This document shows, piece after piece, positions 4,201 through 62,325 of a stretch of DNA of 64,000 nt. A program made the translations under genes and the position numbers. Each line of letters opens with the position of its first letter. Position 1 is the first letter of the stretch. The stretch spans positions 1-64,000 of IMG/VR virus record IMGVR_UViG_3300046787_000286. The stretch is one strand, 5' to 3'. The notes under the pieces are model-generated. The model ran no database searches. It was given only the letters and a program-made list of their open reading frames with translations, and was not told the DNA's origin.

Positions 4201-7200
4201 CTACAACTATTGTAATCAATACTGTTGACGAGTTTGGTGGCATCGGTAGTAACATTGAAGTTGATGCATTAAGCAATCTAACAAGCAAATATGGATTCTA
4301 TCAAGTCCCTGTTAACTTAGAAAACAACCCATTAAACGGGAACAGTAAAACATTCACACTAGGTACAGTTAGATCTCACTATGAGTCTATTGGCGAAAAC
4401 CTTAAAGGGCTGACAGGCAAGATCAACGGTGCTAACAACAGCCGTGACCTAGGCAATATTATTCCCTACGGCGAAAATATCTTGCAACAAAGTTCGCCAA
4501 TGACTTTAGCTGGCTATTTTATGCGTAGCCAAGAATATAATATTTTTGCCTCGCTCGAATACAACAGCCGCGAATATGAAAAATTTAAAGCACAGTTGTT
4601 AGATACTGTAACTCGTAACGATTACACGAACTACACTATTCCTAACATGCTTACAGCAGCAATCAATGACATTAATACTGGCAAGATTGAAACATCGCCA
4701 TTTTACTGGTCAGACATGTTGCCAGCTAGTTCTATCTACAGCCAGAATGTTGTAAAAATTACTCCTATCAGTACAAATGTGTTTGATTTGTCGACCACTT
4801 ACGACTTTACAAGTTCGAATTACAAAGGATTGTTAGTTTACTTGAACGATACGCTGCTAACGATCGACAAAGATTACACTGTATCTTCGGATAGTCCTCA
4901 ATTAACTATCACAGCTACATTAGCTGTTGGTAATACTGTTACTATTAGAGAGTATCCTACTACCAATGGTAATTTTGTTCCAAACACTCCGACGAAAATG
5001 GGATTGTATCCTGCGTACAGACCACGCATTTATGTAGACACAAACTACGTAAATCCTCAAACAATGATTCTAGGACACGACGGCAGTCTAACTGTTGCGT
5101 TTGGTGATTTCCGTGACGAACTGTTGTTGGAGTTCGAAACTCGTATTTTTAATAACTTAAAAGTCCATAGTAAGATTCCAGTAACCGCAGTTGATGTTAT
5201 TCCTGGACAATTTAGAACAACTGATTATACACTAAACGAAATTAATACTATCTTGTCAACTGACTTCTTGAGTTGGATTGGCTGGAACAAACTTAACTAC
5301 CAGTCACAAGATTACGTTTCAACAAATGAGTTTACATGGAATTATAGTGCATGCGGTAACAAATTAACTGGACCGAATGAAGTTCCTGTGCCAGTTGGCG
5401 CATGGAGAGGGTTGTATCAATTCTTCTACGATACCACTAGCCCAAACACTACACCTTGGGAAATGCTTGGATTCAGTATTGAGCCAACATGGTGGGAAGA
5501 CGTATATGGTGCAGCACCATACACTAGCGACAACTTAGTTCTATGGGATGACCTTGCAGCCGGTAAAGTTGCAGATCCTTCTGGCGAGTATTACTTGCCG
5601 CAGTATGCTCGCCCACGTTTAACTGAAGTTATCCCAACTGGAACCGAGGGCGAATTGTTAAGCCCGTTCGACAGTGTAGTCGGCACTTATGATTCAAGTC
5701 AATTCCAAAAATCTTGGGCAGTTGGCGACGAAGGTCCAGTTGAGTACTCATGGAGAAGAAGTTCTAGCTATCCATTTGCAGTAATGCGTTTGTTGGCACT
5801 AACTCGTCCTGCAGAATTCTTCTCATTGTTTGCTGACAGAGATCTTTATAAGTTTGATACTGATTACAACCAGTATCTTTATAATGGACGTTATAGACTT
5901 GATGCTAACGGTGTTCAGGTATATGGCCTGGGTACAAGTAAAGCTAGTTTTATTAACTGGATTGTTGACTATAACCAGCAAACAGGAGTACACACTTCTG
6001 AAAATTTAACAAAAGATCTTGCAAGCCTTGACGTTCGCTTGTGCTATCGTGTTGGTGCGTTTACTGATAAACAATACTTAAAGATTTACACAGAGAAGTC
6101 TAGTCCGAATAGTTTGAATTCTAGCTTGTTGCTGCCAGACGAAAGTTATAGCTTGATGCTATACAAAAATCAACCGTTTGAACGCATAATATACAGTTCT
6201 GTTATTTTCCAAATGGTAGAAAATGGTTATGCAGTTTACGGTTATAGCATTACTGCGCCATATTTTAATACATTGGTTAGTAAAACTTACGGCACAAAAA
6301 CTACAATTAGTGCAGGCGGCCAAAGTATAACTGTTCCTACTCAGTACACAGATGAAGTTGTGCAGGTGCCGTACGGATATGTGTTTACTAACAAAACTGT
6401 AGTGATTGACTTCTTGTTAAGTTACGGTGCGTTACTCGAACAACAAGGTGTAGTGTTCAGCGACAGAGAAAATGGATACACTCTCAACTGGAATCAGATG
6501 GCTCAGGAATTTTTATATTGGGCTAATCAAGGATGGGAGCCAGGCGCAGTTATTAACCTTAATCCAACTGCATTTAGCTTAACTGCTATTCAGCCACAAG
6601 CTATTATTGATAGCATTGTGGCACAAACTCCTGAGAACAGTATACTTGACCAAAATAGATCTACTGTGCCTGTGCGCAACTTAGTAGTAGATCGTAACGA
6701 AAATGTCTTCAAGGTGTCGACATTAAATGAACAAACTATTAGCTATCTAGATCTTAAATTTACAAATTACGAAAGTATTGTTGTATTAGATAATATTAGT
6801 GTCTTCAATGATTTAATTTACGAACCTGTAACAGGCGCACGCCAAAGCAGAATTAACGTCACTGCTATTATTAATTCTGACTGGAACGGTCAATTAGATG
6901 CACAAGGATTTATTTTCAATAACAGTGCAACCATTGAGCCATGGTCTTCGTTGAAAAAATATGCCAAGGGCGAAATTGTTACCTATAAGAACAACTACTG
7001 GGCAGCGCAAACTATTGTGCAACCTAAGTTAGAATTTGATTACAGCGATTGGGTCAAGAGCGACTATACAAAAATTCAAAAGGGATTGCTGCAAAACTTA
7101 CCGAACCTAAGTGATCAATTGGCCAATTCTTATAACACAAATAGTGCTAACTTGGAAACAGATCAAGATTTAGTATCATTTGGGTTGATTGGATTCCGTC

Positions 7201-46883: not shown

Positions 46884-47126
46884 TTACTTAGGTGAATACT
46901 CTTTGCCGTCAATGATAACCGAAGTAGTTCCGGATTTGTCACTTTGACGAACTGCGGTTGTGCTGTTTGGGCATCGTGCCACTGTAATGCTTGCACCATC
47001 TCCGTCTGTTAAACGAAAGAACTTGCAGTCCTTTAATTCGTCGGGTAGAACTGGATAGTTTTTAACTCGTGCATCAGGACTGCATCCAGCTAGCACCAAC
47101 AGTCCGATAATAAACAAATGCTTCAT
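46884..47126 (-). CDS. Small lipoprotein
   Basis: Lipobox 'LVLAGC' after a hydrophobic signal. Confidence 0.7.
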   Translation of the reverse strand: MKHLFIIGLLVLAGCSPDARVKNYPVLPDELKDCKFFRLTDGDGASITVARCPNSTTAVRQSDKSGTTSVIIDGKEYSPK

Positions 47127-47155
47127 AGTGTCCTTTTGATGCTGTCTATGTGTAT

Positions 47156-47184
47156 ATTATAGCAAATCAATAGTTTTTAGTCAA
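47156..47184 (-). promoter_or_regulatory. sigma70 promoter TTGACT-17-TATAAT
   Basis: Near-consensus, with TGC before the -10. Confidence 0.8.
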
Positions 47185-47188
47185 CTAA

Positions 47189-47482
47189 TTAGCGTACCTT
47201 AAAGAATTGGAACTCTTGGAACAGGACTGTAAAAGCAACGCCTTTGACAGCTGGATTAGTGCTCTTGCGCACGCCAAACATCTTGGCGCCTTTAGCCAAG
47301 TCCATCTCCCAACCCACAAGGGTCATGCCAGCCATGAACAAGATAGCAAGGATGCTCAAGGGCCACAGGACGCCCAGCAAGAACACAACGCTTACATCTT
47401 CGTGCGGTACACGAGCGGCAAATGCACCAACGAGTAGGATAACGCCTGTTGCGTAGATTGCGTATGCTGTAAGAAAGTCCAT
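47189..47482 (-). CDS. Small membrane protein
   Basis: 97 aa, two hydrophobic segments, AGGAG RBS. Confidence 0.7.
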   Translation of the reverse strand: MDFLTAYAIYATGVILLVGAFAARVPHEDVSVVFLLGVLWPLSILAILFMAGMTLVGWEMDLAKGAKMFGVRKSTNPAVKGVAFTVLFQEFQFFKVR

Positions 47483-47515
47483 GTTCTACTCCTGTTTGTT
47501 GCTGTCTATGTGTAT

Positions 47516-47544
47516 ATTATAGCAAATCGGGCATTATTGGTCAA
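47516..47544 (-). promoter_or_regulatory. sigma70 promoter TTGACC-17-TATAAT
   Basis: Part of a 52-bp exact repeat shared with 50636-50687. Confidence 0.8.
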
Positions 47545-47550
47545 CCGTGA

Positions 47551-47580
47551 AAAAAGGTAACACTTTCGTATTACCTTTTG
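47551..47580 (-). terminator. Intrinsic terminator with GAAA loop
   Basis: Minus strand AAGGTAATAC-GAAA-GTGTTACCTT-TTT. Confidence 0.75.
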
Positions 47581-47596
47581 TAGGGGCTAGTTTTTG

Positions 47597-48445
47597 TTAT
47601 TTGCTTACGTTAATAAACGGGACATTGTTGCCAAGCACAGTGTTGGGCAGTTGACCGTTCCACTTTTCGATTGCTTGCAATTGTACGTATGCCGCGCCGC
47701 CTTGATGTTGAATGGCACTTGCTTGGATCGCAATAGCTTCGGCTTCACCTTTAGCTTGTGCAATACGGCTCTTAGCTTCAACTTGAATACGTTCGTAGTC
47801 TTGATCAGCTCGCAATTTGGCCTGTGTAGCAATAACCTTTTGCTCAATAGCATCTTGATATGCTTTGCTGAATCCAAAGTTAACCAAGCTCACGTTGTTC
47901 ACAACAATGTTGAATGGTGCCAACTTTTCGCTCAGTCGAGCCATAATGTCTAAGTTAACTGCATCGCGTTTGGTGATCAGTTCTTCACTGGTATAGTGAC
48001 CAACTGCTGACTTAAACGATTCGTTAATAGCCGGTCCTAGCACCTTTGTGTCTACGTCCAGTCCAAACTCTTTGTAGATGTGCGGCACTTTGTTTGGCGT
48101 CAAGCGATAGTTGATAACAATATCAGTATGCACTTGTTGAATATCTTTGGTGCCGGCACTTGCGTTATTCAAGTTAGCACGAGCAAGTCGAACGTCAACA
48201 TACTTGACATTACTAATTGGATTAACAAACTGAGCGCCTTCGGTTAGCACAGTTTGATTAACTTCGCCCATTGTAATCTGCACACCCACGTGACCAGCAG
48301 GCACAATAGTGAATGAGCTATAGATTACACCAATAGCAAAGATTACAATACCTGCTACATTAGCCAGCACTTTTTGCTGGAGGAAAACTGCAATAGCCGC
48401 AGATGCAACTACTGCAAGAATAAAGAAAAATACAATTGTAAACAT
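47597..48445 (-). CDS. SPFH/prohibitin (band 7) family membrane protein
   Basis: 'IVPAGHVGV', 'GTKDIQQV', 'EELITKRD', 'VSLVNFGFSKAY..AIEQK', 'IEKWNGQLP'; start ATG 48445. Confidence 0.9.
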   Translation of the reverse strand: MFTIVFFFILAVVASAAIAVFLQQKVLANVAGIVIFAIGVIYSSFTIVPAGHVGVQITMGEVNQTVLTEGAQFVNPISNVKYVDVRLARANLNNASAGTKDIQQVHTDIVINYRLTPNKVPHIYKEFGLDVDTKVLGPAINESFKSAVGHYTSEELITKRDAVNLDIMARLSEKLAPFNIVVNNVSLVNFGFSKAYQDAIEQKVIATQAKLRADQDYERIQVEAKSRIAQAKGEAEAIAIQASAIQHQGGAAYVQLQAIEKWNGQLPNTVLGNNVPFINVSK

Positions 48446-48841: not shown

Positions 48842-50149
48842 TTAGCGACCTTTCTTTTCTTCGTCGTAGTAGGCGTATTGTCCCCATGGTGGAACAATGG
48901 TAGTAGTTCCGTGCAAGATAAACACTGTGTCAGTGTAGTTCTCGTCGCCCCAGCTACCAAATGGGTAACCGTCAGTAAACATAATCAAACGCTTGGGTTC
49001 AATTTCTTCTGCCTTCAAGTAGTTGTAAACACAGTCAAAGTCTGTGCCACCGCCACCTTTGACTTCGTAGTCACAGATTGAATCTAAGTTTTCTGAATCG
49101 TACTGAGCAGGATTGTATGCTTCAGTATCAAACGTCACAACGTGAATCTTGTAAGCAGGGAACGAGTCCATGATGCCTTGGATCTCACTCAAGAAGTCCT
49201 TTAGCATGCTTTCTGAAATAGAACCAGATGCGTCCAATGCCACAGCAATGTCAATCATTGGGTCCAGTTTCATGCCAGGCATAACTGCATCCATGTGCCA
49301 GCCTTTGCGGCTTGAGCGCATCCATGTGTAGTCGGACTTGATAGTAGATTCCAATTGCATACGCAACAGTTCACGCCAGTTCATCTTTGGCTCAGTCAAG
49401 TCATTGATCATGCGTTTGACGCCAGCTGGGATATTGCCTGCATCTTGTGTGGCACTTGCCGCTGCCAACATAGCTTCTTTGATCTCGTCCTTGATAGCGT
49501 CGCGATCAGCCTGGCTCAACTTTGGACGACCTTTGCCTTCTTGGTCGCCGTCGCCGTCGCCGTCACCTTCGCCATCCAAATGCTCGTCGATCATTTTGTC
49601 CAACAAGTCACTCATGTTGATCTTTTGAGCGTTTTGCATCAAGTCGTCATAAACTTCTTCTGAGCTCATGCCTTCGTATTTTTTGTCATACAAGCAAGGC
49701 ACAGTAGTAATCATTTCGCCCACGTTGTGCTTTTTCAAGTCTGCGTTAACACAGAAGTCGTTGGCAAAGTTCCAGATTTTTGGATCACGATCGCCACGGC
49801 GACCAAAGTGATCATAAACGCAGTGTAACACTTCGTGTCCAAACAAGAATTCAATTTCCTTTGGACGAAGCATTTCAACGAAACGAGTGTTGTAATAAAA
49901 ATTACGGCCGTCAGTTGCCGCAGTACCGCACCATTCATCGGCATTGATCAACTTCAAACGAGTGGCCAAGTTACCAAAGAAGCTGGCTTTCAACAGCAAG
50001 CCCACGCGGGCAGTGATCAGTTTTTCGCGAACTTTGCGATCCAGTGCTGGGTCTGTAGGGCCGATAAGATCTTTAAACTTAGCTGACTCTTTGCTGTCGG
50101 CAGTAGTGCCAGCAGTAGCATGCAGTACGTCTGGGTTAAAATATTGCAT
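48842..50149 (-). CDS. Putative metallopeptidase + vWA domain protein (DUF2201-like), MoxR partner
   Basis: 'TAATDG', 'HEVLH' (HExxH), 'DFCVN', vWA MIDAS 'LDASGSI', 'GGGGTDF', 'MFTDG'. Confidence 0.9.
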   Translation of the reverse strand: MQYFNPDVLHATAGTTADSKESAKFKDLIGPTDPALDRKVREKLITARVGLLLKASFFGNLATRLKLINADEWCGTAATDGRNFYYNTRFVEMLRPKEIEFLFGHEVLHCVYDHFGRRGDRDPKIWNFANDFCVNADLKKHNVGEMITTVPCLYDKKYEGMSSEEVYDDLMQNAQKINMSDLLDKMIDEHLDGEGDGDGDGDQEGKGRPKLSQADRDAIKDEIKEAMLAAASATQDAGNIPAGVKRMINDLTEPKMNWRELLRMQLESTIKSDYTWMRSSRKGWHMDAVMPGMKLDPMIDIAVALDASGSISESMLKDFLSEIQGIMDSFPAYKIHVVTFDTEAYNPAQYDSENLDSICDYEVKGGGGTDFDCVYNYLKAEEIEPKRLIMFTDGYPFGSWGDENYTDTVFILHGTTTIVPPWGQYAYYDEEKKGR

Positions 50150-50175
50150 AGGTATCCTTTGTTGTGTTATGTGTT

Positions 50176-50204
50176 AGTATAGCAGATCACAATTTACTGG
50201 TCAA
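50176..50204 (-). promoter_or_regulatory. sigma70 promoter TTGACC-17-TATACT
   Basis: 17-nt spacing, upstream of the vWA gene. Confidence 0.75.
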
Positions 50205-50208
50205 CGTA

Positions 50209-50622
50209 TTACTTGACTAATGCGTAGGGTTTATCCCAGCGGCCAATGTTGATGTCAATGTAGTGCGAGCGATGAAAGTAATCTGTTTGGATGTCGCTGT
50301 GATCAAAGTAGTCTGGGCCTTTCATTGCCGCAACAATCTCAGTCAAAAACGTTTTAGCAACACCGCTGAAGTGCTCGTGATACCAGTATGTGTTGACATC
50401 GATAGAGTTAGTAGCAGGTTGAAATGGCAAGTGTTCTGGGCGAGATTTTGCACCGCATACTTGGTTGTAATTGCCAATGAAGTCGATGCCACCTTGCTGG
50501 ATGTTAAGCACAAGGCTGGAGTGATGACGAACTGCAAGGCTAGCTTTGACACCGTACTTTTTGCAGATTGCTTTGATAGCTGGTGCCAATTTTGCTTTCA
50601 TTTCCTGGGATACAAATGCCAT
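50209..50622 (-). CDS. Hypothetical protein
   Basis: 137 aa with GGAG RBS; 'DHSDIQTDYFH..YIDINIG.WDKPY'. Confidence 0.75.
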   Translation of the reverse strand: MAFVSQEMKAKLAPAIKAICKKYGVKASLAVRHHSSLVLNIQQGGIDFIGNYNQVCGAKSRPEHLPFQPATNSIDVNTYWYHEHFSGVAKTFLTEIVAAMKGPDYFDHSDIQTDYFHRSHYIDINIGRWDKPYALVK

Positions 50623-53661: not shown

Positions 53662-54753
53662 TTAGGCCGAAGCCTGCAAAATGTACTTGCCGTACTTGTC
53701 GTGGAACTGATCAAAGTTCTTCAACTTGGTAGGCTGGAATGGCAAGTTGTATGTGGTAAGCGCAATACGAGCACCCATCACAACCAACTCAGTTTCAAAG
53801 TTCTTCATCATGTATGAGAAGAAGTTATCTGCCATTTCGTGGAACTTCTTAGAATCCACTTTTGCTTCCACTGCACCCTTCAATTCGTAGCACATGGAAA
53901 TCACCAGTGAGTACATCGCTGACACTTCCTTGACATTCAAGTCCATGACCTTGCCTGACAAAATGTCTTCTGGCTTGGGCATGCGACCTGCAATCTTACG
54001 GTGAGCCATAAACTTCACAGCAAGACCTTCGCCAACAGTACCTGCAATCAAGTTGGTTGCTGTTTCGTCATCTACAGTTTCGTCATCCAACAGCTGGCTC
54101 ACAAAGGTCCATGAACGTGGAGTAGCGAACGCCCGGCTTGCAGATTTTGCATCAAAGTCATACAAGTCTTGCTTGGCAAAGCTCAAGTAACCCACAACGT
54201 CTTTGTTGATGTTGGCGTTAACGGCCCATTCTTGCCAGCTTGGGAAGTCAACACGCATTTCTTGGTGAACAAAACGGTTGCTCAACGGAGTTGGCATACG
54301 ATATGTCACACCTTTGTCTGACTCACGGTTACCTGCGGCAACCATAACCACGTTGTCTGGCAACATATACTTGCCAATACGACGGTTCAAAATCAACTGA
54401 TAAGCCGCAGATTGCACAGAAGGTGCAGCCGAGTTCATTTCGTCCAAGAACAACACCACAACTGGGTATTGTGCGGCAGTTTCTGCGTCGGGCAAGTCAA
54501 CTGGAGCTGCCCAGTCCATTTTGCCATTGTCTTTGTTGTAGAATGGGATACCACGAATGTCTGTGGGCTCCATCTGACCTAAACGCAAGTCATACATGAT
54601 ACCACCGAGGTCCTTGGTAATACCTTCAACAAGCTCTGACTTACCGATACCAGGAGGGCCCCACAAGAAGATTGGGCGTTTAACTTTGAAAGCCTGCAAA
54701 ATGGATTTACGGGCTTGGACTGCGGTAACGGTACGTGCATCTGATACTGACAT
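53662..54753 (-). CDS. MoxR-like AAA+ ATPase
   Basis: Walker A 'GPPGIGKS', 'DIRGIP', Walker B 'LFLDEMN', 'AAGN', 'LSNRF', 'TPRSW'. Confidence 0.92.
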   Translation of the reverse strand: MSVSDARTVTAVQARKSILQAFKVKRPIFLWGPPGIGKSELVEGITKDLGGIMYDLRLGQMEPTDIRGIPFYNKDNGKMDWAAPVDLPDAETAAQYPVVVLFLDEMNSAAPSVQSAAYQLILNRRIGKYMLPDNVVMVAAGNRESDKGVTYRMPTPLSNRFVHQEMRVDFPSWQEWAVNANINKDVVGYLSFAKQDLYDFDAKSASRAFATPRSWTFVSQLLDDETVDDETATNLIAGTVGEGLAVKFMAHRKIAGRMPKPEDILSGKVMDLNVKEVSAMYSLVISMCYELKGAVEAKVDSKKFHEMADNFFSYMMKNFETELVVMGARIALTTYNLPFQPTKLKNFDQFHDKYGKYILQASA

Positions 54754-54794
54754 GGGCTGTGCCTTTCTGTTTAAAAATTAACTACTGAAACTCT

Positions 54795-54823
54795 ATTATA
54801 GCAAAAGTTGATTTATTGGTCAA
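54795..54823 (-). promoter_or_regulatory. sigma70 promoter TTGACC-17-TATAAT
   Basis: Upstream of the MoxR gene. Confidence 0.8.
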
Positions 54824-54826
54824 CTA

Positions 54827-54991
54827 TTAGCTGTTGATTGTTGCAAACGGACTGTTGTTTTCATGCAACTGTTCTTGCTCTTCGAAGATCCAAGAAATTG
54901 GAATATCAAGCGCATAAGCAATGTCAACTGGTTCTTCGCCACGCTCAAGGCGCTCTTGGATCATTATTGATAAATCACTCATCTTGCTCAT
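54827..54991 (-). CDS. 54-aa hypothetical protein
   Basis: MSKMSDLSIMIQERLERGEEPVDIAYALDIPISW (HTH-like); AGGAG RBS. Confidence 0.7.
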   Translation of the reverse strand: MSKMSDLSIMIQERLERGEEPVDIAYALDIPISWIFEEQEQLHENNSPFATINS

Positions 54992-55096: not shown

Positions 55097-56233
55097 TTAC
55101 ACACTAGCAACTTTATACAACGGGCTTAGATGCCCTTTTAATCCTTCGTTGACTGTGTTGTTATTGAACCATTTTTTGCCGCATTGGCGTTCTAGTTCCC
55201 ACAGGCTACCTTCCCACTTGAGTCTCGCTTCTAACTGCCCATCCAAAAACCACTTGGACAGTTCGTTGTAGATAGCACCAGTTGGCTTTTTAATCTGCCA
55301 TGTGTTATGATTCCAGTCTGCATAGATACTGAAGTTTACTTCTTTGTAATAACTTTCGTCGTGGAAGCTAGCAACATTACTCATGTGTTTGATTAGATTG
55401 AGTTTGTTGTTGGCACGAAGCCAGTTTACAACCACATGACTTTGCTTGATTGCTAGTTCGGGCATGTTCGGAGACCAATAAAAGTACTCGTCGTTCTCCC
55501 AGTACTCGCCAAGTATGTCATTAGTTGGCAAGGTGCCAGTGGTCATAATAACATCTAAAAATGCAAAGTAGATGTTATTGTCATCACGAAGCAGTCTTGG
55601 CTTATCTACCCCGTAAACAAACCCAACACGTTTTCCGCGATGCACTAACTCGTTGTGCTCTCGGAATACTTTGTGAAACTTGCTACGAACCATGCAAGTA
55701 GGATCGAATCTAACTCCGGCTGACCAAATCCAATCAGGGTCGTTAGCAGCTTCTACTATGTGCTTGGTCCAATCAAACACGTTAACTTTGATTTTTTTAT
55801 CCGCTACAAGTTTTTTAAGAGCGGGCAGGGCCTGTTGAATTTCTCTAGTGTAGTAACCGGGGTCACGACCAAATCCCAATCGAGAGTATTCTTTCTCTTC
55901 GGCTTCGAATGCACCGAACATGTAGATCTCATCTATGCGGATATTATTTTTAATAAACGCATTGAGGATATTCCAACTATCAACTCCGCCTGAATAGAAC
56001 AACACTAAATGGTCATATGCTTCGCGAAGTTGTAATGCTCGCTGTTTGTATAGCTCTTCTAGCTCTACAGTTGGTTCGAGATCCCACTTGTGCGCTCCGA
56101 AGATAGCGTCGTGATAGTCCCACTCAATCCACGAACCTGGATTAGCGTTGACTTCTAATATGGCTTCTAGTTTGTTTAAAAAAGGTTTACCGTTTGCACA
56201 GTAAATCCCTTTATTATGATACAGATATGTCAT
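55097..56233 (-). CDS. PP-loop (N-type ATP pyrophosphatase / adenine nucleotide alpha hydrolase-like) protein
   Basis: 'LVLFYSGGVDSWNIL' SGGxDS motif; 'GVDKPRL'; substrate unknown. Confidence 0.7.
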   Translation of the reverse strand: MTYLYHNKGIYCANGKPFLNKLEAILEVNANPGSWIEWDYHDAIFGAHKWDLEPTVELEELYKQRALQLREAYDHLVLFYSGGVDSWNILNAFIKNNIRIDEIYMFGAFEAEEKEYSRLGFGRDPGYYTREIQQALPALKKLVADKKIKVNVFDWTKHIVEAANDPDWIWSAGVRFDPTCMVRSKFHKVFREHNELVHRGKRVGFVYGVDKPRLLRDDNNIYFAFLDVIMTTGTLPTNDILGEYWENDEYFYWSPNMPELAIKQSHVVVNWLRANNKLNLIKHMSNVASFHDESYYKEVNFSIYADWNHNTWQIKKPTGAIYNELSKWFLDGQLEARLKWEGSLWELERQCGKKWFNNNTVNEGLKGHLSPLYKVASV

Positions 56234-57123
56234 TGGCGAGCGTTATTAATTTGTTGCTTAAATTGTTCTTGTTTGATTCTAACAGTGTTCATAGATGTTG
56301 CATAAAACTCTTCTACAGTAACATTATCAAACACTGGAGGTCTAACAGCAGATAGCTTGTAGATTTCTTCTGGTCCTACGAATTTTGTGGCATTGTTCAA
56401 GATAATACCAATAGCTTTCCTGCGAGTTTCGTTCATGCTTTTAGAAGCAACGATAATATTAAAAACATATGGTGCGTCCATACCAAGTTCTTTAAGAGTT
56501 TTTACTTTGGGCTCTTGCGGCAAACGAGTTTGACAACTTGCTGCTACCATTTTTAAATTTGAATTTTTTGTCTTTAGAGCTGCATAGGATTCGTAACGAT
56601 CGATAACAAACTCAACACCATTATTGCCGGCCATGTTGATTAACGCATCATTATTAGATTTGAACACAATATAACGAGTTTTAAACTTATACTTTTCTGC
56701 AAGCATTAGACCGGTTAGATGTGAAGCATTGCCGTATCCTACTCCCCCGAGTGTAAACTCAGTTTGATTTTTAAAATCCTTGTTAGTCACAACAGCCCAA
56801 CATGCATTTCCTAATGCATACACTGGCACGTAGTTTTCTTCTTTAAGTTTGCCAGTAGCAATATTATCAACATACGCCGGTGCTATAATAGCTAGACTAT
56901 TTTCTGTAGTTAGTGATGTTACTGCAATTGTTTGATTACCACCTGGTTTAAACTCTAGTATAAAGGTATAGGCGGTTTGAGATGAATTTGCTGCATCAAT
57001 GATTTTATACAAGGCAGGCGTTGCACTATGGCTTGGTGAATACGGCGAATAAATTTTGATAACTTCGCTAGCGTTAACAACTGCCGAGCCAAGAAGTAAT
57101 AATGTAAAAAAAAGTTTTTTCAA
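56230..57123 (-). CDS. TctC/Bug-like periplasmic solute-binding protein
   Basis: TTG start with AGGAG RBS; signal peptide; 'IYSPYSPSH', 'EFKPGGNQTIA', 'GGVGYGNASHL', 'IVFKSNNDALINMAG', 'PKVKTLKELG'. Confidence 0.75.
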   Translation of the reverse strand: MKKLFFTLLLLGSAVVNASEVIKIYSPYSPSHSATPALYKIIDAANSSQTAYTFILEFKPGGNQTIAVTSLTTENSLAIIAPAYVDNIATGKLKEENYVPVYALGNACWAVVTNKDFKNQTEFTLGGVGYGNASHLTGLMLAEKYKFKTRYIVFKSNNDALINMAGNNGVEFVIDRYESYAALKTKNSNLKMVAASCQTRLPQEPKVKTLKELGMDAPYVFNIIVASKSMNETRRKAIGIILNNATKFVGPEEIYKLSAVRPPVFDNVTVEEFYATSMNTVRIKQEQFKQQINNARQ

Positions 57124-57274
57124 TTTTAAATCTCCTAAATAAGAATAACTTAAGAGCTAGTAGAAGACCTCTACTCACGGACGGCGTTATAGGCATATTA
57201 TGCTAGTAAAAGAGTAAAGTACTCTAGGCGTCGATTTGATTCCGACGTCGGAAAGAACTCCGGCGTTGCAATAT
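57124..57274 (-). ncRNA. Candidate structured 5' leader (cis-regulatory RNA)
   Basis: ~150 nt between a TAAATA and the RBS, containing palindrome TTCCGACGTCGGAA, hairpins AGAGTA/TACTCT, GCATA/TATGC and AGTAGA/TCTACT, and three ACGCC repeats. Confidence 0.45.
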
Positions 57275-57280
57275 TATTTA
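57275..57280 (-). promoter_or_regulatory. Putative late promoter TAAATA
   Basis: TATTTA on the + strand at the 5' edge of the leader. Confidence 0.5.
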
Positions 57281-57301: not shown

Positions 57302-57607
57302 TTATTCTTCAGGTGTAATACCGTTTGAGTGCTTGTCTGTCTGCCGTTCCACATCTTGCATCAGTCTGCGTTCTTGCGTTGTTAACCGTTCTTTCTTAGT
57401 CCAGGCATTTCTACGAGGGTTGCCGCAAAGTGTGCATCCTGGTGTACCACAATCCATAGCATGGCGCTTGGCTAGACGATGTGGTTCCTTGTCTAGTTTT
57501 GTGTTATGGCTGCTGCTTTGTTTGGCAATTTTAAGTTGTCTTGCAATAAACACATCTGTCTTATGACGACGGCGGGAATTTAAGAATTTTGCTGTTTCGT
57601 TGCTCAT
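57302..57607 (-). CDS. Basic protein with putative Zn-binding Cys motif
   Basis: 'HAMDCGTPGCTLCGNPRR'; ATG lies 5 nt after a TAAATA. Confidence 0.75.
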   Translation of the reverse strand: MSNETAKFLNSRRRHKTDVFIARQLKIAKQSSSHNTKLDKEPHRLAKRHAMDCGTPGCTLCGNPRRNAWTKKERLTTQERRLMQDVERQTDKHSNGITPEE

Positions 57608-57612
57608 ACAGT

Positions 57613-57618
57613 TATTTA
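57613..57618 (-). promoter_or_regulatory. Putative late promoter TAAATA
   Basis: Immediately upstream of ATG 57607. Confidence 0.55.
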
Positions 57619-57658
57619 AGTTGGGTAGAACTAATTATAAAAGTTCTACCCCTTAAAA

Positions 57659-58174
57659 TCAACTGTTTAGAACACGAGCAACACTAGTGATTACACTAGC
57701 AATCCGCCCGATATCGCGCAACTGCTCAACTGTGTAACCTTCTTGTTTTAAAGTCTCGTAGTGAGCCTTTACACAAAAATGGCACTTGCCTACAATACTC
57801 GCTGCCAAGCTGTATGCTTCGAATCGAGCTTTAGTTGTGCCGCCATGTGAACTAATAGCGTTCATGCGTAACTGGGCCGGCAAACCTTTTAAGTTCTCGT
57901 CATCGGCCATTTCGACATAGGGGTACCAGATGTTGTTTTGTGCCATGATCGAGCCGGCTGTTAGTGCAGCATCACGCTCTTTTGTGTCAACAATGCTGCT
58001 ACTAATAAAAGTAATCAGTTTGCCGTTACCTGTTGCAAAGGCCGCAGCCAGTGCAATTGCTTCTGCTTCCTCTGGTGCCAAGGTACTGCGTTTGATCACA
58101 GCGTCAAGATTTAACTTGGTGTCCTTAGCATACTCAGGAAGACCTTCTTTAAGTTGGTCTACCCATGCAGTCAT
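57659..58174 (-). CDS. ahpD: Alkyl hydroperoxidase AhpD
   Basis: 'YAKDTKLNL', 'MAQNNIWY', 'KCHFCVKAH' CxxC; TAATG-coupled to ahpC. Confidence 0.9.
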   Translation of the reverse strand: MTAWVDQLKEGLPEYAKDTKLNLDAVIKRSTLAPEEAEAIALAAAFATGNGKLITFISSSIVDTKERDAALTAGSIMAQNNIWYPYVEMADDENLKGLPAQLRMNAISSHGGTTKARFEAYSLAASIVGKCHFCVKAHYETLKQEGYTVEQLRDIGRIASVITSVARVLNS

Positions 58175-58713
58175 TACAGAGTCTCCCCGCCTACTGTACG
58201 GTTACAAGCGCAAAGTTCGCCAGTCTGCAATGCGTCAAGAATACGCAGAGTTTCTTCTGGGCTACGGCCAACGTCCAAGTTGTTGACAGTAACGTGTTGG
58301 ATAACGTTGTCCGGGTCAACGATGAATGTTGCGCGAAGTGCCGCACCTGCTGGCGCATAGAACACACCTAGTTGTTCGACCAAGCTCAACTCACCACGCT
58401 GTGTATCAGCAAACTGAGTGTGAGTAATTTTCTTCAAATCACTGTGTGCCATTTGCCATGCTGTCTTACAGAACTCGTTGTCTGTTGAACCTGTTAGCAA
58501 TACTGCATCGCGATCAGCAAAGTCACCAGTCAACTTATCGTAGGCCACAATTTCAGTTGGGCAAACGAATGTGAAGTCTTTTGGATAGAACACGATTACT
58601 TTCCATTTGCCTTCGAAGCTTTGGTCTGTAATTGTGAAGTATGCGTCTTCTGGTTGGCCTGGCTTAACTCCTGTGACTGCGAACGCTGTTAGTTTATCAC
58701 CGATTGTTTTCAT
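58174..58713 (-). CDS. ahpC: Peroxiredoxin AhpC
   Basis: 'FYPKDFTFVCPTE' peroxidatic Cys, 'RATFIVDP', 'GELCACNR'. Confidence 0.95.
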   Translation of the reverse strand: MKTIGDKLTAFAVTGVKPGQPEDAYFTITDQSFEGKWKVIVFYPKDFTFVCPTEIVAYDKLTGDFADRDAVLLTGSTDNEFCKTAWQMAHSDLKKITHTQFADTQRGELSLVEQLGVFYAPAGAALRATFIVDPDNVIQHVTVNNLDVGRSPEETLRILDALQTGELCACNRTVGGETL

Positions 58714-59068: not shown

Positions 59069-59152
59069 TGGTGCCCAGGGCGAGACTCGAACTCGCACGG
59101 ATTTCTCCACTACCACCTCAAGATAGCGTGGCTACCATTACACCACCTGGGC
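59069..59152 (-). tRNA. tRNA-Leu(GAG)
   Basis: GCCCAGG/CCTGGGC acceptor, CTATC-TTGAGGT-GGTAG anticodon arm, long variable arm, TTCGAGT, CCA. Confidence 0.93.
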
Positions 59153-59527
59153 TTATCTTATTGCTTTTGCTCTAGCGTGAATAACATCATCAACATTGCC
59201 TTTAACAATGACATTGGTGTAGGTGTCTACAAATTCGCTAGCATGATCTACCACACGATTGTCAGGTTCGTGGTAGGTCCTAACTCGCTCGCTACCTGCT
59301 AGGTTGCGTTCCTTGTCTTTGTGGAAGTGTGCCTGAATGCGTGACAAGCAGGTAATGTAGGCTGCACGTTTGTTATCTTCGCGGCTACGGCTGTTAGTGC
59401 CGTTCGCTTGAATGCCAGTGGGCTCATGAATGCATCGGCAACAATTTTGATGCTTGTTACGATGTTGCCCACCTTTGCCTGTTCCAGAGAACCACTCGTA
59501 ACGAAATTGATCTTCTGTAATTTTCAT
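59153..59527 (-). CDS. Truncated class-I peptide release factor (GGQ domain; ArfB/PrfH-like)
   Basis: 'WFSGTGKGGQHRNK...IHEPTGI...SRSREDNK..A' plus RF-like 'ERVRTYHEPDNRVVDH'; start ATG 59527 with AGGAG RBS. Confidence 0.85.
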   Translation of the reverse strand: MKITEDQFRYEWFSGTGKGGQHRNKHQNCCRCIHEPTGIQANGTNSRSREDNKRAAYITCLSRIQAHFHKDKERNLAGSERVRTYHEPDNRVVDHASEFVDTYTNVIVKGNVDDVIHARAKAIR

Positions 59528-59541
59528 TGCAGTCTCCTGAT

Positions 59542-59616
59542 TGGTGCGCGATGAGAGATTCGAACTCCCGACATCTGTCGAGTCAGAACAGCGCTCTACC
59601 ACTGAGCTAATCGCGC
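59542..59616 (-). tRNA. tRNA-Val(GAC), atypical U37
   Basis: GCGCGAT/ATCGCGC acceptor, canonical D and T arms, CTGTT-CTGACTC-GACAG anticodon arm, A73, CCA. Confidence 0.85.
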
Positions 59617-59794
59617 AAAAAAAGCAGTAGGGTTACTGCAAACAGAATGAACTGAGTGGCTTGCCCTACTGCGGATGTTGTGTGCATACTACTTGTCTCA
59701 TTATACTCCGCATGCAAGGGAGAGGCTTCTAACAGTAGGCGTTTAGAGTTCGGCGTTAGCGGAAACATCTAACCGTTTTGTCCTACTGTGTTAT

Positions 59795-59877
59795 TGGTGC
59801 GGACGGTGAGACTCGAACTCACACGCACTAGGCACTGGCTTCTAAGACCAGCGTGGCTACCATTACACCACGTCCGC
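59795..59877 (-). tRNA. tRNA-Leu(TAG)
   Basis: GCGGACG/CGTCCGC acceptor, CTGGT-CTTAGAA-GCCAG, long variable arm, CCA. Confidence 0.93.
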
Positions 59878-59883
59878 AATTTT

Positions 59884-60111
59884 TTATCTAACTTTTTTAA
59901 GATACTCTGGACCGACTTTGCCGGCTTGCACTTCAAGTAATGCAGTAACTGAAGCATTCAACTGACCAGGATTTTCTGATCGTTTATGCCTGACAATAAG
60001 TTCACGCACTCTAGCAGATGCTGCGATTACTAAATCGAATCTGTTGCCAATTTGTTCAACACAAGCGTCTGTATCAATTTGAGTTCCGCGACTTTCAGTG
60101 AGAATTTTCAT
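59884..60111 (-). CDS. rpoZ: RNA polymerase omega subunit homologue
   Basis: 'CVEQIGNRFDLVIAASARVREL...TALLEVQAGKV' matches the omega pattern (NRF.LV..A..RAR.L...AL.EI..GK). Confidence 0.8.
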   Translation of the reverse strand: MKILTESRGTQIDTDACVEQIGNRFDLVIAASARVRELIVRHKRSENPGQLNASVTALLEVQAGKVGPEYLKKVR

Positions 60112-60131
60112 AAAATATCTAAGTTAGTTGT

Positions 60132-60205
60132 TGGATGCGGGAGACAGATTCGAACTGCCGATGCACCTGGCTTATGAGACCGGTGTGGTGGCCACCCTTC
60201 CCGCG
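60132..60205 (-). tRNA. tRNA-Met(CAT), initiator-like but atypical
   Basis: C1:A72 mismatch, CTCATAA loop, GGCAG-TTCGAAT-CTGTC T arm, CCA; reduced D arm and U73. Confidence 0.75.
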
Positions 60206-60212
60206 TAATTAC

Positions 60213-60779
60213 TTATACCAATTGTTCTGCTTGGAGCAAAGCAACTGTGTCGGCATCCAATTCGATTTCGGTGCGAACGTTGAGTTCTAACACTTTGTCA
60301 TTGATGCTTTGCTTTTCTTTCTTGAGGCTTCGCATGTCGGCTTTGTAGGCTTCGATTTGAAGGTTGTCTAACACGCCAGTGTCGACGTTGTCGTTGTAAC
60401 CGTAAACACGGTTCTTGTTGTCTGTGTTGCGAAGTTTTTCTAACTTGCCGTTGAGAACAACGTAAGACTCAGCAGCCTTGCTCTCTGTCAGGCCTTTCAG
60501 GTGTCCTAGACGCTTGTCAACAAACGCAGCTTCAGCAAGCAAATCGCTTACGCCACTTTCTACGTTAGCACGACCAACACGGGCACGGATGCCATACAAC
60601 ACCTTGGTCAACTTTGCACGACGAAGGTCGCTTTCAACTAATGCACCACGTGCAACAGCGATCTCACCTTCAACGGTCTGGAACTCGTTTAGGGAGATCG
60701 ATGTTTTTACATCAATGGTTTTGATGTGATCCTGAATTGTGTTTTGCAGGGCGTTTGCTTTGCGAAGTGTAATCTTCAT
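60213..60779 (-). CDS. Coiled-coil hypothetical protein
   Basis: 188 aa 'MKITLRKANALQ...'; AAGGAA RBS. Confidence 0.8.
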   Translation of the reverse strand: MKITLRKANALQNTIQDHIKTIDVKTSISLNEFQTVEGEIAVARGALVESDLRRAKLTKVLYGIRARVGRANVESGVSDLLAEAAFVDKRLGHLKGLTESKAAESYVVLNGKLEKLRNTDNKNRVYGYNDNVDTGVLDNLQIEAYKADMRSLKKEKQSINDKVLELNVRTEIELDADTVALLQAEQLV

Positions 60780-60789
60780 ATTCGAGTTC

Positions 60790-61084
60790 CTTTCTATTTG
60801 AATTAGTAGCAGTGAGCGTATGGCAAGTCAATCGCCGGACAATGTGCAAGAGACATTAGCGAATGATAATTTTTCAGGTTATCACTTTACTAAAGCAAAA
60901 TACAAGAGACAGAGGATACCAATATTTCCGAGCATCAACAAACAGCGACTATAACAGCCAGTATAATCTCGGATCACTGGATCACGATTGGTAATTCCAG
61001 TAAGCATTTCAAGTGCTAACTAGAGGTGCAATCTCTCATCTCCATACACATCACAGTCCTGTTTTAAGAAACAGGCAAAAACTT
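60790..61084 (-). ncRNA. Candidate structured leader/ncRNA
   Basis: ~295 nt with no ORF in the track; hairpins CCTGTTT/AAACAGG, ACTGGA/TCCAGT, TCCGAG/CTCGGA and TGATAA/TTATCA; TGTCTCTTG occurs twice. Confidence 0.4.
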
Positions 61085-61162
61085 TGGAGTCCCGGGTAGG
61101 ATTCAAACCTACGAATCGATGGATTTGCAATCCACGCCATTAAGTCGCTCTGGTACCGAGAC
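61085..61162 (-). tRNA. tRNA-Cys(GCA)
   Basis: GTCTCGG/CCGGGAC acceptor, GTGGA-TTGCAAA-TCCAT, U73, CCA; T loop TTTGAAT. Confidence 0.9.
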
Positions 61163-61167
61163 ATATT

Positions 61168-61250
61168 CTTTATATGTAAACACACTAAAACGCGACCTTA
61201 GTTTCCCAGTTACGGTATTGTCAGTTGGTATAATGTGTTTGCATATAAAG
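61168..61250 (-). ncRNA. 83-nt element closed by a 17-bp stem
   Basis: CTTTATATGCAAACACA ... TGTGTTTACATATAAAG (one G-U pair). Confidence 0.45.
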
Positions 61251-62158
61251 TGGCGGACTGAGAATACATCCTAACCTAGTAACACCTCGGACATTATTAC
61301 AAACCTTGCGAGTCTGCTTTCTTCCGACTTCCACTAAAACCATATTGCTATGTATTCTAGTCTGTTACCAGTATCGCCGTTTTTAAAGACAGGCAGTAGT
61401 CTTGTCGTCACATGCTACTCTACACCATCTATCCCGTTGACCTTTAGAGCCATTCACTGTCGCTAAACAGCTACGAAACTTCCAGTATAAACAGATTTCA
61501 CCTTGCGAGTTACGTCTGACTGTATTGCCTTGCGGCTACAGCATTAGATACTTTTCACACATGACCGAGTCAGTCTTTGCATTTTAATCGTTAGCGGGAG
61601 TTGAACCCGCAGTCGACTCCTTAACAGGGAGTTGGCCTACCATTAGCCTATAACAACCTACTGCGATGTGCTGACTCAGTTGCTTCATACTCTTTTGGAA
61701 TACAAAATACAACACACCACGTTCCTTTTGTCTTGCGAACTACTCAGACGTCTTTTGCGATATGTGTCGGGTCTCGGCTTTCGCGTACCTCCACTTACCA
61801 CTCAAACTGCATACGAGCCCTAGGGTGCAACCCCTCGGACAAATACACTACCCTTTCTCATACCAATTAACTGGACTGGTTTCGTTGTGAAGTCAGCACC
61901 ACCTGTTACTTTCCATCTACTCAAGTTCCCCTTGATGCAATCTCAGGCTTGTAAGCAAACGTTCTTTCCACAACATCCAGCGTCATTGTTACAACCACCG
62001 GTCTTATCAGTGATCGCTCCCTTGCAGGAGTGAGCAGGCTTGCCTAAGTGAACTATTTTTAGTAGCGGAGTTATGTAGGCATACCTCCTTTGGCTGTGTC
62101 ACCACAGTTATTCTTCACTAGATAGCAAGCTACCTAGTAGGACATTAAGCTGCCCTTA
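61251..62158 (-). ncRNA. Large ornate ncRNA, GOLLD-like
   Basis: ~900 nt ORF-free, behind a perfect sigma70 promoter, next to tRNAs; many GNRA (GCAA/GAAA)-capped hairpins; embedded tRNA in a helix tip; boundaries approximate. Confidence 0.7.
61586..61657 (-). tRNA. tRNA-Asn(GTT) embedded in the large ncRNA, no encoded CCA
   Basis: GTTGTTA/TAACGAT acceptor, GGCT-AATGGTA-GGCC D arm, ACTCC-CTGTTAA-GGAGT, GCGGG-TTCAACT-CCCGC. Confidence 0.8.
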
Positions 62159-62164
62159 TATTCT

Positions 62165-62193
62165 ATTATAACATTGATTGCTGCACTTGTCAA
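62165..62193 (-). promoter_or_regulatory. Consensus sigma70 promoter TTGACA-17-TATAAT
   Basis: Perfect consensus; points into the large ncRNA/tRNA array. Confidence 0.88.
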
Positions 62194-62210
62194 CCATCAA
62201 CATTACCAAA

Positions 62211-62325
62211 TCTGTAAACAACTGCACACTTACAGGACTCGAACCTGACGACCAGGGCAATAGCCCTAGCTATGAATCCAACCATATCAGCGTGGCCTAC
62301 GCCTTTATGTGCATGTGTTTAAAGA
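62211..62325 (-). ncRNA. 115-nt tRNA-like small RNA without CCA
   Basis: Ends pair (TCTTTAAACA..TGCACA / TGTGCA..TGTTTACAGA); internal hairpins GCGT/ACGC and CTAGGGC/GCCCTGG; T arm CAGG-TTCGAGT-CCTG; has its own promoter. Confidence 0.55.

Follow-up and report, generated by a model that had tools for sequence, protein, structure and literature searches.

A conserved, structured leader RNA that is inferred to head late transcripts of nutrient-uptake genes in freshwater jumbo phages

Introduction

Does the long intergenic stretch upstream of a TctC-like binding-protein gene in a jumbo-phage genome encode a functional RNA, and if so, of what kind? The DNA analysed here (referred to as the window) comprises positions 1 to 64,000 of the 214-kb IMG/VR virus record IMGVR_UViG_3300046787_000286, which is estimated to be 62% complete. 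Genes around the locus run on the minus strand in the order of an AhpC-like gene (58174-58713), a CMD-family gene (57659-58174), a 101-aa ORF (57302-57607), a gap of 178 nt, the TctC-like gene (56230-57123) and a gene for a 378-aa protein (55097-56233). A preliminary description, made from the sequence alone, noted a TAAATA element and a dense set of hairpins in this gap. It proposed a late promoter followed by a new cis-acting RNA or riboswitch, with ligand- or protein-responsive control of the solute-binding gene. We found that the 115-nt stretch is one copy of a previously uncatalogued, strongly conserved family of folded RNAs. What it binds is unknown, and a riboswitch is possible but unproven.

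Results

The elements of the leader and its appearance as a single sequence

To examine the leader, we first located its elements on the minus strand, and the observation held, with every listed element present. The TAAATA lies at 57275-57280, a palindrome, TTCCGACGTCGGAA, at 57240-57253, AGAGTA-CTT-TACTCT at 57211-57225, GCATA-A-TATGC within 57190-57205, and AGTAGA-GGTCT-TCTACT at 57159-57175. The motif (A/G)ACGCC occurs three times (57262-57267, 57227-57232 and 57183-57188), AGGAG is at 57132-57136, and the TTG start codon is at 57121-57123. As a single sequence, however, the stretch is not more structured than chance. The minimum free energy was -37.1 kcal/mol, as compared with -36.0 +/- 4.2 for dinucleotide shuffles (z = -0.26), and the gap ranks only about 30th of 280 intergenic gaps in the genome. 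The evidence that the hairpins are real comes only from the comparison with homologues. A consensus terminator and promoter scan found only a terminator-like hairpin on the plus strand, which is the P1 hairpin (see below) read antisense. This reading was rejected because of the strand bias described below and the gene orientation. A small ORF (57074-57196, 40 aa) was also rejected as a leader peptide, because it starts inside the variable P3 stem and is not conserved.

The preliminary description further stated that most other TAAATA sites in the window lie within about 7 nt of an ATG, and this was overstated, since only 5 of 17 other sites do so. Genome-wide, 30 of 93 sites lie within 40 nt upstream of an ORF start, at distances of 1-37 nt. 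The underlying point still holds. TAAATA is depleted in this genome as a whole (93 sites against about 242 expected from composition), but is enriched between genes (42 against 7.9 expected), and the distance of 151 nt from the site at 57275-57280 to its start codon is the longest of any gene-proximal site.

Search for homologues

A scan with the Rfam 15 models (4227 models), which had been put forward beforehand as a check, gave no hit in the region at gathering thresholds, although a GOLLD RNA was found elsewhere in the window. At E <= 10, only unrelated and inconsistent chance hits were obtained for the window copy and three other family members (L015, L104 and L258). A blastn search of the region against GenBank phages also found no match. 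Searches of the literature by sequence string and by topic found no description of the motif, although overlap with the unnamed, uncurated candidates of the 2023 catalogue of viral structured RNAs (PMC10690425) is not excluded.

The upstream regions of homologous tctC-like genes had been named in advance as the place where a real leader should be conserved, and the lack of conservation there as grounds for rejecting it. Thirteen viral loci encoding TctC homologues (46-68% identity) were found, and in the twelve that include the 5' end of the gene, the gene abuts the preceding ORF and has no leader. On its own, this result would have refuted the proposal. On the other hand, a search of the whole records of relatives with the intergenic DNA found a 78%-identical stretch elsewhere in one relative, upstream of an unrelated PotF-like binding protein, where the hairpin sequences differ but still pair.

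To collect further copies, a pattern built from the shared P1 region (AACGCCGG N3-12 CCGACGTCGG) was used, and it hit 88 viral stretches. Of these, 67 (59 distinct) carry the whole leader, and the rest are GC-rich coding matches. A second pattern, which took only the central module and left P1, Pk, P0 and P4 unconstrained, matched at least 120 stretches and, after filtering with a covariance model, added 53 copies, 45 of them distinct. Together, the two scans with the covariance-model filter gave 67 and 45 distinct copies, so that the family has more than 110 distinct members in viral contigs, and more exist. The records belong to freshwater jumbo phages of ~320-350 kb. Related records carry one copy, and rarely two adjacent ones, and reach 317-320 kb at 89-93% estimated completeness. 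The window copy (57156-57270) scored 114.8 bits (E 2e-24) with covariance model R1, and is the only copy in the 214-kb record. In one representative genome for each of 185,579 prokaryote species, a strict three-element pattern gave 97 matches, of which only two were true copies, both on contigs of a single Haliscomenobacter MAG and probably phage DNA.

Structure of the RNA

To test the fold, six helices were evaluated on a structure-blind MAFFT alignment (A1) of 57 copies. In this alignment 95.6% of cells pair, against 80.4 +/- 0.6% in column shuffles and 29-53% when the partners are slid, and there are 287 double-change cells, against 96 in shuffles. In the second sequence set, aligned to the model (A6), 95.1% of cells pair, against 75.1% in shuffles, and 24 of 28 pairs show compensatory change. 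Over alignments A1, A3 and A6, 95-96% of cells were paired, against 75-80% in shuffles, and compensatory changes occur in every helix. At modelled pairs, G.U outnumbers A.C by 59 to 14, which places the selected RNA on the strand of the gene. These results refute the explanation that chance hairpins arose in an ordinary spacer without function, for which the single-sequence z-score and the unexceptional gap were the only support.

The fold is a four-way junction that encloses a three-way-junction module. The junction is closed by the 2-bp stem P0, in which GC at 57268-57269 pairs with GC at 57156-57157. The G2:C pair of P0 changes to A:U in six family members and to G.U in one. Extension of P0 by a third pair (N1 with the base after AGC) gave 33 of 67 Watson-Crick pairs against about 26 expected, and was not adopted. 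The P1 hairpin (57245-57266) consists of ACGCCGG, the loop AGTTCTTT and CCGACGT, with an invariant C.A mismatch (C57263 opposite A57248). P1 was invariant by construction in the first set, but 6 of its 7 pairs covary in the second set, while the C.A mismatch never changes. The CGG that follows P1 (57242-57244) pairs with the CCG of the conserved CCGU (57178-57180) to form helix Pk, which encloses an A-rich linker and the module. The compensatory variants GGG:CCC, CGA:UCG and CAG:CUG occur in six family members, and only one low-scoring copy (L310, 49 bits) could not be fitted. The palindrome noted in the preliminary description does not act as a palindrome, since its 5' half is the 3' strand of P1 and its CGG forms Pk. 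The P4 hairpin (57159-57175) has covariation in all 5 pairs. A further pair, Px (column 42:97), was paired in 50 of 57 sequences of the first set with covariation, but in only 20 of 45 of the second, and is treated as weak and non-essential.

The three-way-junction module (57182-57233) is composed of C-GACGCC-U, P2 (57211-57225), UUUAC, P3 (57190-57205) and U-AACGCC-G, in which GACGC faces ACGCC with conserved A.C mismatches. In the family, it reads GACGCYU / P2 / CUUUAC / P3 / GAACGCC. All of the P2 and P3 pairs covary. The junction strands CYU, UUUAC and GAA, the CCGU, the C.A mismatch in P1 and the A.C mismatches in the GACGC/ACGCC helix never vary, and about 35 invariant bases sit in junctions and mismatches while the stems vary. 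P1 and the GACGC/ACGCC helix are near-duplicates of one element, ACGCC opposite GACG with one C.A.

The module is an independent, reusable unit and probably the functional core. Three copies of the whole leader (class I; L025, L041 and L096) carry it twice in tandem, and one copy replaces it with another insert. The second pattern also recovered a different leader (class II) in AT-rich phage contigs, in which the same three-way junction, with covarying P2 and P3 and identical junction strands, sits on a long covarying stem between a tail-fibre-like gene and an uncharacterised ORF of 325-333 aa.

A junction-rich fold with invariant core nucleotides is also the signature of small ribozymes, and the tandem duplication is compatible with a processed unit. 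However, there was no match to any ribozyme family in Rfam 15, the fixed position relative to the promoter and start codon is typical of cis regulators, and no terminator delimits a separate small RNA. A self-cleaving or otherwise processed RNA, or a 5'-UTR-derived small RNA acting in trans on host mRNAs, is considered very unlikely.

Promoter and predicted 5' end

To investigate the promoter, the sequences upstream of 66 distinct copies were compared. TAAATA is present in 64 of them, while the other two have TAAGTA, and it lies 5-6 nt before G2 of the RNA in 57 of 66. In the window the element reads AATAAATA, with 7 of 8 matches to the T4 late consensus TATAAATA and without a -35 element. With the spacing of T4 late promoters, the start would be placed at N1 or G2 (57269-57270), and the first bases of the mRNA would then be P0. 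The 5' end was not mapped here, since the public runs containing this sequence are assembled contigs, which gave no transcript ends or expression evidence. These features support the late-promoter reading. T4 gp55 found homologues in three near-complete relatives, G028, G033 and G017 (E ~1e-7), and one of them matches the PHROG family "sigma factor for late transcription" (phrog_12791) at 3.8e-75. No homologue was found in the record of the window itself, which is 62% complete, so whether this phage encodes its own gp55-like factor is left undecided. However, G033 has both the sigma factor and the same leader-TctC-PP-loop synteny, with 77% amino-acid identity in the 378-aa protein. Several copies also carry a sigma-70-type promoter upstream of TAAATA, downstream of the leader or inside the P4 loop, and in those copies only some transcripts would carry the fold.

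The position immediately after a promoter in every copy, and the presence of intrinsic terminators before many cassettes, which sit in arrays of genes, would also suit an RNA polymerase-directed element analogous to the put antiterminator RNA of phage HK022, by which the nascent leader would modify the late transcription complex to read through downstream terminators. This reading is very doubtful, because the constrained distance to the start codon points to translation or stability, there is no similarity to known antiterminator RNAs in Rfam, and no terminators were identified between the leader and the cargo gene.

Cargo genes and cassettes

The cargo gene in the window encodes a TctC-like periplasmic solute-binding protein (297 aa, TTG start, signal-peptide-like N-terminus; Pfam TctC, E 3.6e-6), with homologues of 43-68% identity in other phage contigs. 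Of 98 downstream genes in the family, Pfam assigned 34 to TctC, 14 to DctP, 4 to ABC-type binding proteins, 1 to TctA, 5 to porins, 7 to TauD-like dioxygenases and 4 to DUF2061 membrane proteins, with singletons including a tryptophan halogenase, a fatty-acid desaturase, a hexapeptide transferase and an Asp/Arg hydroxylase. Many were unassigned. About 60% encode binding proteins, porins or transporter parts, and PP-loop enzymes also occur as cargo. The substrates of the cargo proteins could not be assigned, since NCBIfam gave only generic family hits, and no single ligand suggests itself. The porin types and the abundance of TctC-family proteins suggest a betaproteobacterial host, which is an inference.

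The 378-aa protein (55097-56233) belongs to a family of paralogues of 365-410 aa that flank the leader-cargo cassettes. In 44 of 66 loci a member lies directly beside the leader or its cargo, often on both sides. The family has an invariant SGGxDS motif, and its AlphaFold model (AF2, pLDDT 83) matches PP-loop ATP pyrophosphatases (NAD synthetase, LarE and TtuA), which supports the earlier PP-loop label at fold level only. One wetland contig keeps the leader and the PP-loop gene but has 303 other letters in place of TctC, with the junction inside P4. The leader thus heads interchangeable cassettes, and precedes at least 12 protein families.

These features, and the absence of the leader from the closest TctC homologues, would also be expected of a mainly DNA-level module, a portable late-promoter block whose conserved sequence serves as homology for swapping cargo. 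As the sole explanation this is very unlikely, because homology blocks do not require the compensatory changes seen in 24 of 28 pairs, and the G.U over A.C bias indicates selection on one RNA strand. This role may well coexist with an RNA function.

Output side of the leader

The RNA ends 24-37 nt before the start codon in most members. In the window, the bases directly 3' of P0 form a predicted RBS-occluding hairpin (57132-57155), in which UCUUAAGU pairs with AUUUAGGA(G) and covers the SD AGGAG at 57132-57136, with a predicted SD pairing probability of 0.82. The same UCUUAA..UUAGGAG arrangement occurs in about 17 of 50 family members including the window copy, and is confined to one subfamily. 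Family-wide, the leader-to-start regions are on average no more structured than shuffles (mean z -0.34), there is no terminator, and the hairpin does not visibly compete with the core fold. A general SD-sequestration model was not supported, and the hairpin of this subfamily does not settle whether the RNA has a riboswitch expression platform.

The lack of a universal switch element, the heterogeneous cargo, the paired first bases at the predicted transcription start, and an unstructured A-rich spacer of 15-25 nt before the SD in most members would fit a passive role, in which the compact fold protects late mRNAs from 5'-end-dependent decay or offers a ribosome standby platform without sensing any factor. 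We regard this as unlikely, though the strongest of the alternatives. A stabiliser needs only a terminal hairpin, whereas the junction and mismatch nucleotides are invariant across more than 110 copies while the stems drift, and the C.A mismatches are never repaired. In addition, each ~330-kb genome uses the leader only once or twice, although many late genes would benefit from it.

Discussion

That this is a real, selected RNA structure on the strand of the gene is, in our view, close to certain. The analysis itself establishes the family and its phage records, the four-way junction with its enclosed module, the TAAATA element 5-6 nt upstream, and the spacing to a variable cargo gene, while everything on function is inference. 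We infer that the RNA is transcribed from a gp55-type late promoter, so that its first bases are the mRNA 5' end, that it acts in cis on the late mRNA, and that its invariant junction and mismatch nucleotides form a binding site for a trans factor, either a small molecule or a phage or host protein, whose occupancy sets translation initiation and/or stability of the cargo mRNA. In the window copy the output element would probably be the RBS-occluding helix abutting P0. Invariant unpaired bases and never-repaired mismatches among drifting stems are the usual signature of a specific binding site, and we therefore favour a factor-binding regulatory leader, as somewhat more likely than not. A small molecule or ion is a tentative possibility, which fits the junction-centred conservation, the tandem arrangements and the transporter-rich context. 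A protein is held slightly less likely still, and fits the duplicated helical element, the near-absence from bacterial genomes and the tail-fibre-neighbourhood context.

The interpretation in the preliminary description was thus supported in part, strongly for a new cis-RNA and also for the late promoter, but not for the ligand-responsive control typical of a solute-binding-gene riboswitch. The covarying aptamer-like fold with conserved unpaired nucleotides and the location upstream of the gene on the same strand agree with a riboswitch, but binding was not assayed. The reading is weakened by the closest TctC homologues without a leader, the heterogeneous cargo, the restriction of the RBS-occluding hairpin to one subfamily, the near-absence from bacterial genome contigs, and the module in front of the uncharacterised gene of class II, which fits metabolite sensing poorly.

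Among known systems, the orphan phage- and metagenome-associated motifs of Weinberg et al. 2010 (Genome Biol 11:R31, PMC2864571), such as manA, wcaG and PhotoRC-II, are likewise reported to be structured motifs found by covariation, mostly or only in phage or environmental sequence, upstream of host-like auxiliary genes and without a known ligand. GOLLD reportedly comes from metagenome work of the same authors. The present RNA has no sequence or structure match to any of them, is tied to a T4-type late-promoter-like element, and has cargo dominated by TTT/TRAP binding proteins of a probable betaproteobacterial host. Three-way-junction riboswitch aptamers, for example the purine class, and tandem riboswitches resemble the ~52-nt module in its invariant junction strands, freely varying stems, reuse in two architectures, occasional duplication and position in 5' UTRs close to the RBS. 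This resemblance was not put to a test, no sequence is shared, and no loop-loop complementarity was seen. T4 late promoters share the TATAAATA-like element at a fixed distance from the first base of the RNA and the gp55-like factor found in relatives. In the promoter-position-dependent RBS occlusion of T4 genes e and soc, the late start removes an inhibitory hairpin, whereas here it would add a large conserved fold. Where sigma-70 promoters are also present, early and late transcripts would differ in their 5' structure. The PeSL cassettes of T4-type phages (Arbiol, Comeau and Krisch 2010) similarly have a conserved promoter-plus-structure block at interchangeable genes in a variable region, but are reportedly early promoters with simple stem-loops acting as recombination homology. 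The present unit has a late-type element and a multi-helix fold maintained by compensatory changes. The translational operators bound by phage proteins (T4 RegA, gp32 and gp43; MS2 coat protein) and the dimer-bound thrS operator are also cis elements next to the RBS, and the two nearly identical helical elements of the leader could be read by a dimer. The known operators are small hairpins or pseudoknots, and no candidate binding protein has been identified here.

Orphan cis-regulatory, riboswitch-candidate RNAs of phages are already known as a kind, and what is new is this family. Structured RNA classes with this much covariation and this many invariant core bases are rare finds, and many earlier examples turned out to be riboswitches, ribozymes or specific protein-binding sites. 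It is possible, though tentative, that the three-way-junction module is the aptamer of a new, apparently phage-specific riboswitch class, deployed in at least two leader architectures, which would let jumbo phages tune late expression of nutrient-uptake proteins, and in other phages a gene in a tail-fibre-like neighbourhood, to an intracellular signal of the infected cell. The invariant C.A mismatches and the reusable module are concrete targets for biochemistry and structure work. The RNA appears almost confined to phages, is tied to the inferred T4-type late transcription programme, and heads the host-derived nutrient-uptake genes (TTT, TRAP and ABC binding proteins, porins and dioxygenases) that freshwater jumbo phages shuffle among themselves. 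It therefore offers a direct experimental handle on how and when phages express auxiliary metabolic genes, and if a ligand exists, it would be a phage-borne sensor of host physiology.

Variants of the leader and of the three-way-junction module

A second leader class was found in AT-rich phage contigs, at positions 527-632 of locus L258, 2533-2643 of L259 and 11995-12117 of L281, and also in L252, L261, L278, L285, L239 and L333. In this class, the same three-way-junction module sits on a long covarying stem (GCUAUAAU..AUUAUAGC), followed by a GUUGAU..AUCAAC hairpin and an SD. It lies between a tail-fibre-like gene and an ORF of 325-333 aa. In L281, L252 and L261, the 5' strand of the stem could instead pair with an upstream AUUUAUAG, and this alternative pairing is a possible switch.

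In the leaders of L025 (positions 125-306), L041 (222-403) and L096, the three-way-junction module is tandemly duplicated within one leader, and in L041 and L096 an extra hairpin is inserted in the linker. A 'mini' variant was observed at 6053-6145 on the minus strand of L025. This variant has a terminator, TAAATA, P0, P1, Pk and P4, but a different insert takes the place of the three-way junction, and it is located 121 nt upstream of a signal-peptide protein.

The only true copies of the leader in the bacterial genome collection, L139 and L207 (NZ_JBBAKG010000090.1 and NZ_JBBAKG010000031.1), lie on two contigs of a Haliscomenobacter MAG. One of them closely resembles the phage group with the PotF-like cargo, and therefore, these are probably phage contigs that were binned with the MAG.

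Promoters and genes around the leader

A highly repeated sigma-70-type promoter block (TTGACC-N17-TATAAT followed by ATACACATA) occurs upstream of many small genes, at 46884-47600, 48842-50260 and 53662-54830 of the window and at many sites beyond it (for example, genome positions 67055, 163238, 170051 and 200181). These blocks are presumably the early promoters of this phage. At 57613-57660 on the minus strand of the window, a perfect 9-bp hairpin (GGGTAGAAC-N11-GTTCTACCC) lies directly before another TAAATA, which is only 5 nt from the ATG of the 101-aa ORF. The transcript from this site would be a near-leaderless late transcript.

Just upstream, at 57659-58713 on the minus strand, AhpC/peroxiredoxin and carboxymuconolactone-decarboxylase-family (AhpD-like) genes lie in tandem. 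These genes are very abundant, with many variants, in the freshwater sequencing runs that were compared with the region. Farther along the window, a GOLLD RNA (Rfam RF02032, 197.6 bits) was detected at 61255-61720 on the minus strand, and a tRNA-Asn (61585-61658) lies inside its span. It sits in a cluster of five more tRNA genes, and the tRNAs of this region extend over 59069-62312. One ARAGORN call, at 62224-62312, has an odd two-base anticodon. In the relative G002, an HNH-type homing-endonuclease-like ORF (330 aa; positions 336-1328 of locus L015) lies just upstream of the terminator-promoter-leader unit.

Arrays of paralogous PP-loop-fold proteins of 365-410 aa, with an invariant SGGxDS, flank the leader-cargo cassettes; they include the protein encoded at 55097-56233 of the window and occur in 44 of 66 related loci. 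No function is known for these proteins, and no Pfam, PHROG or NCBIfam family matches them. In one wetland metagenome contig (run X4), the leader (from 57170 upward) is joined to the PP-loop gene (from 56227 downward), with 303 unrelated letters in place of the TctC gene. The cargo has been swapped at the leader boundary.
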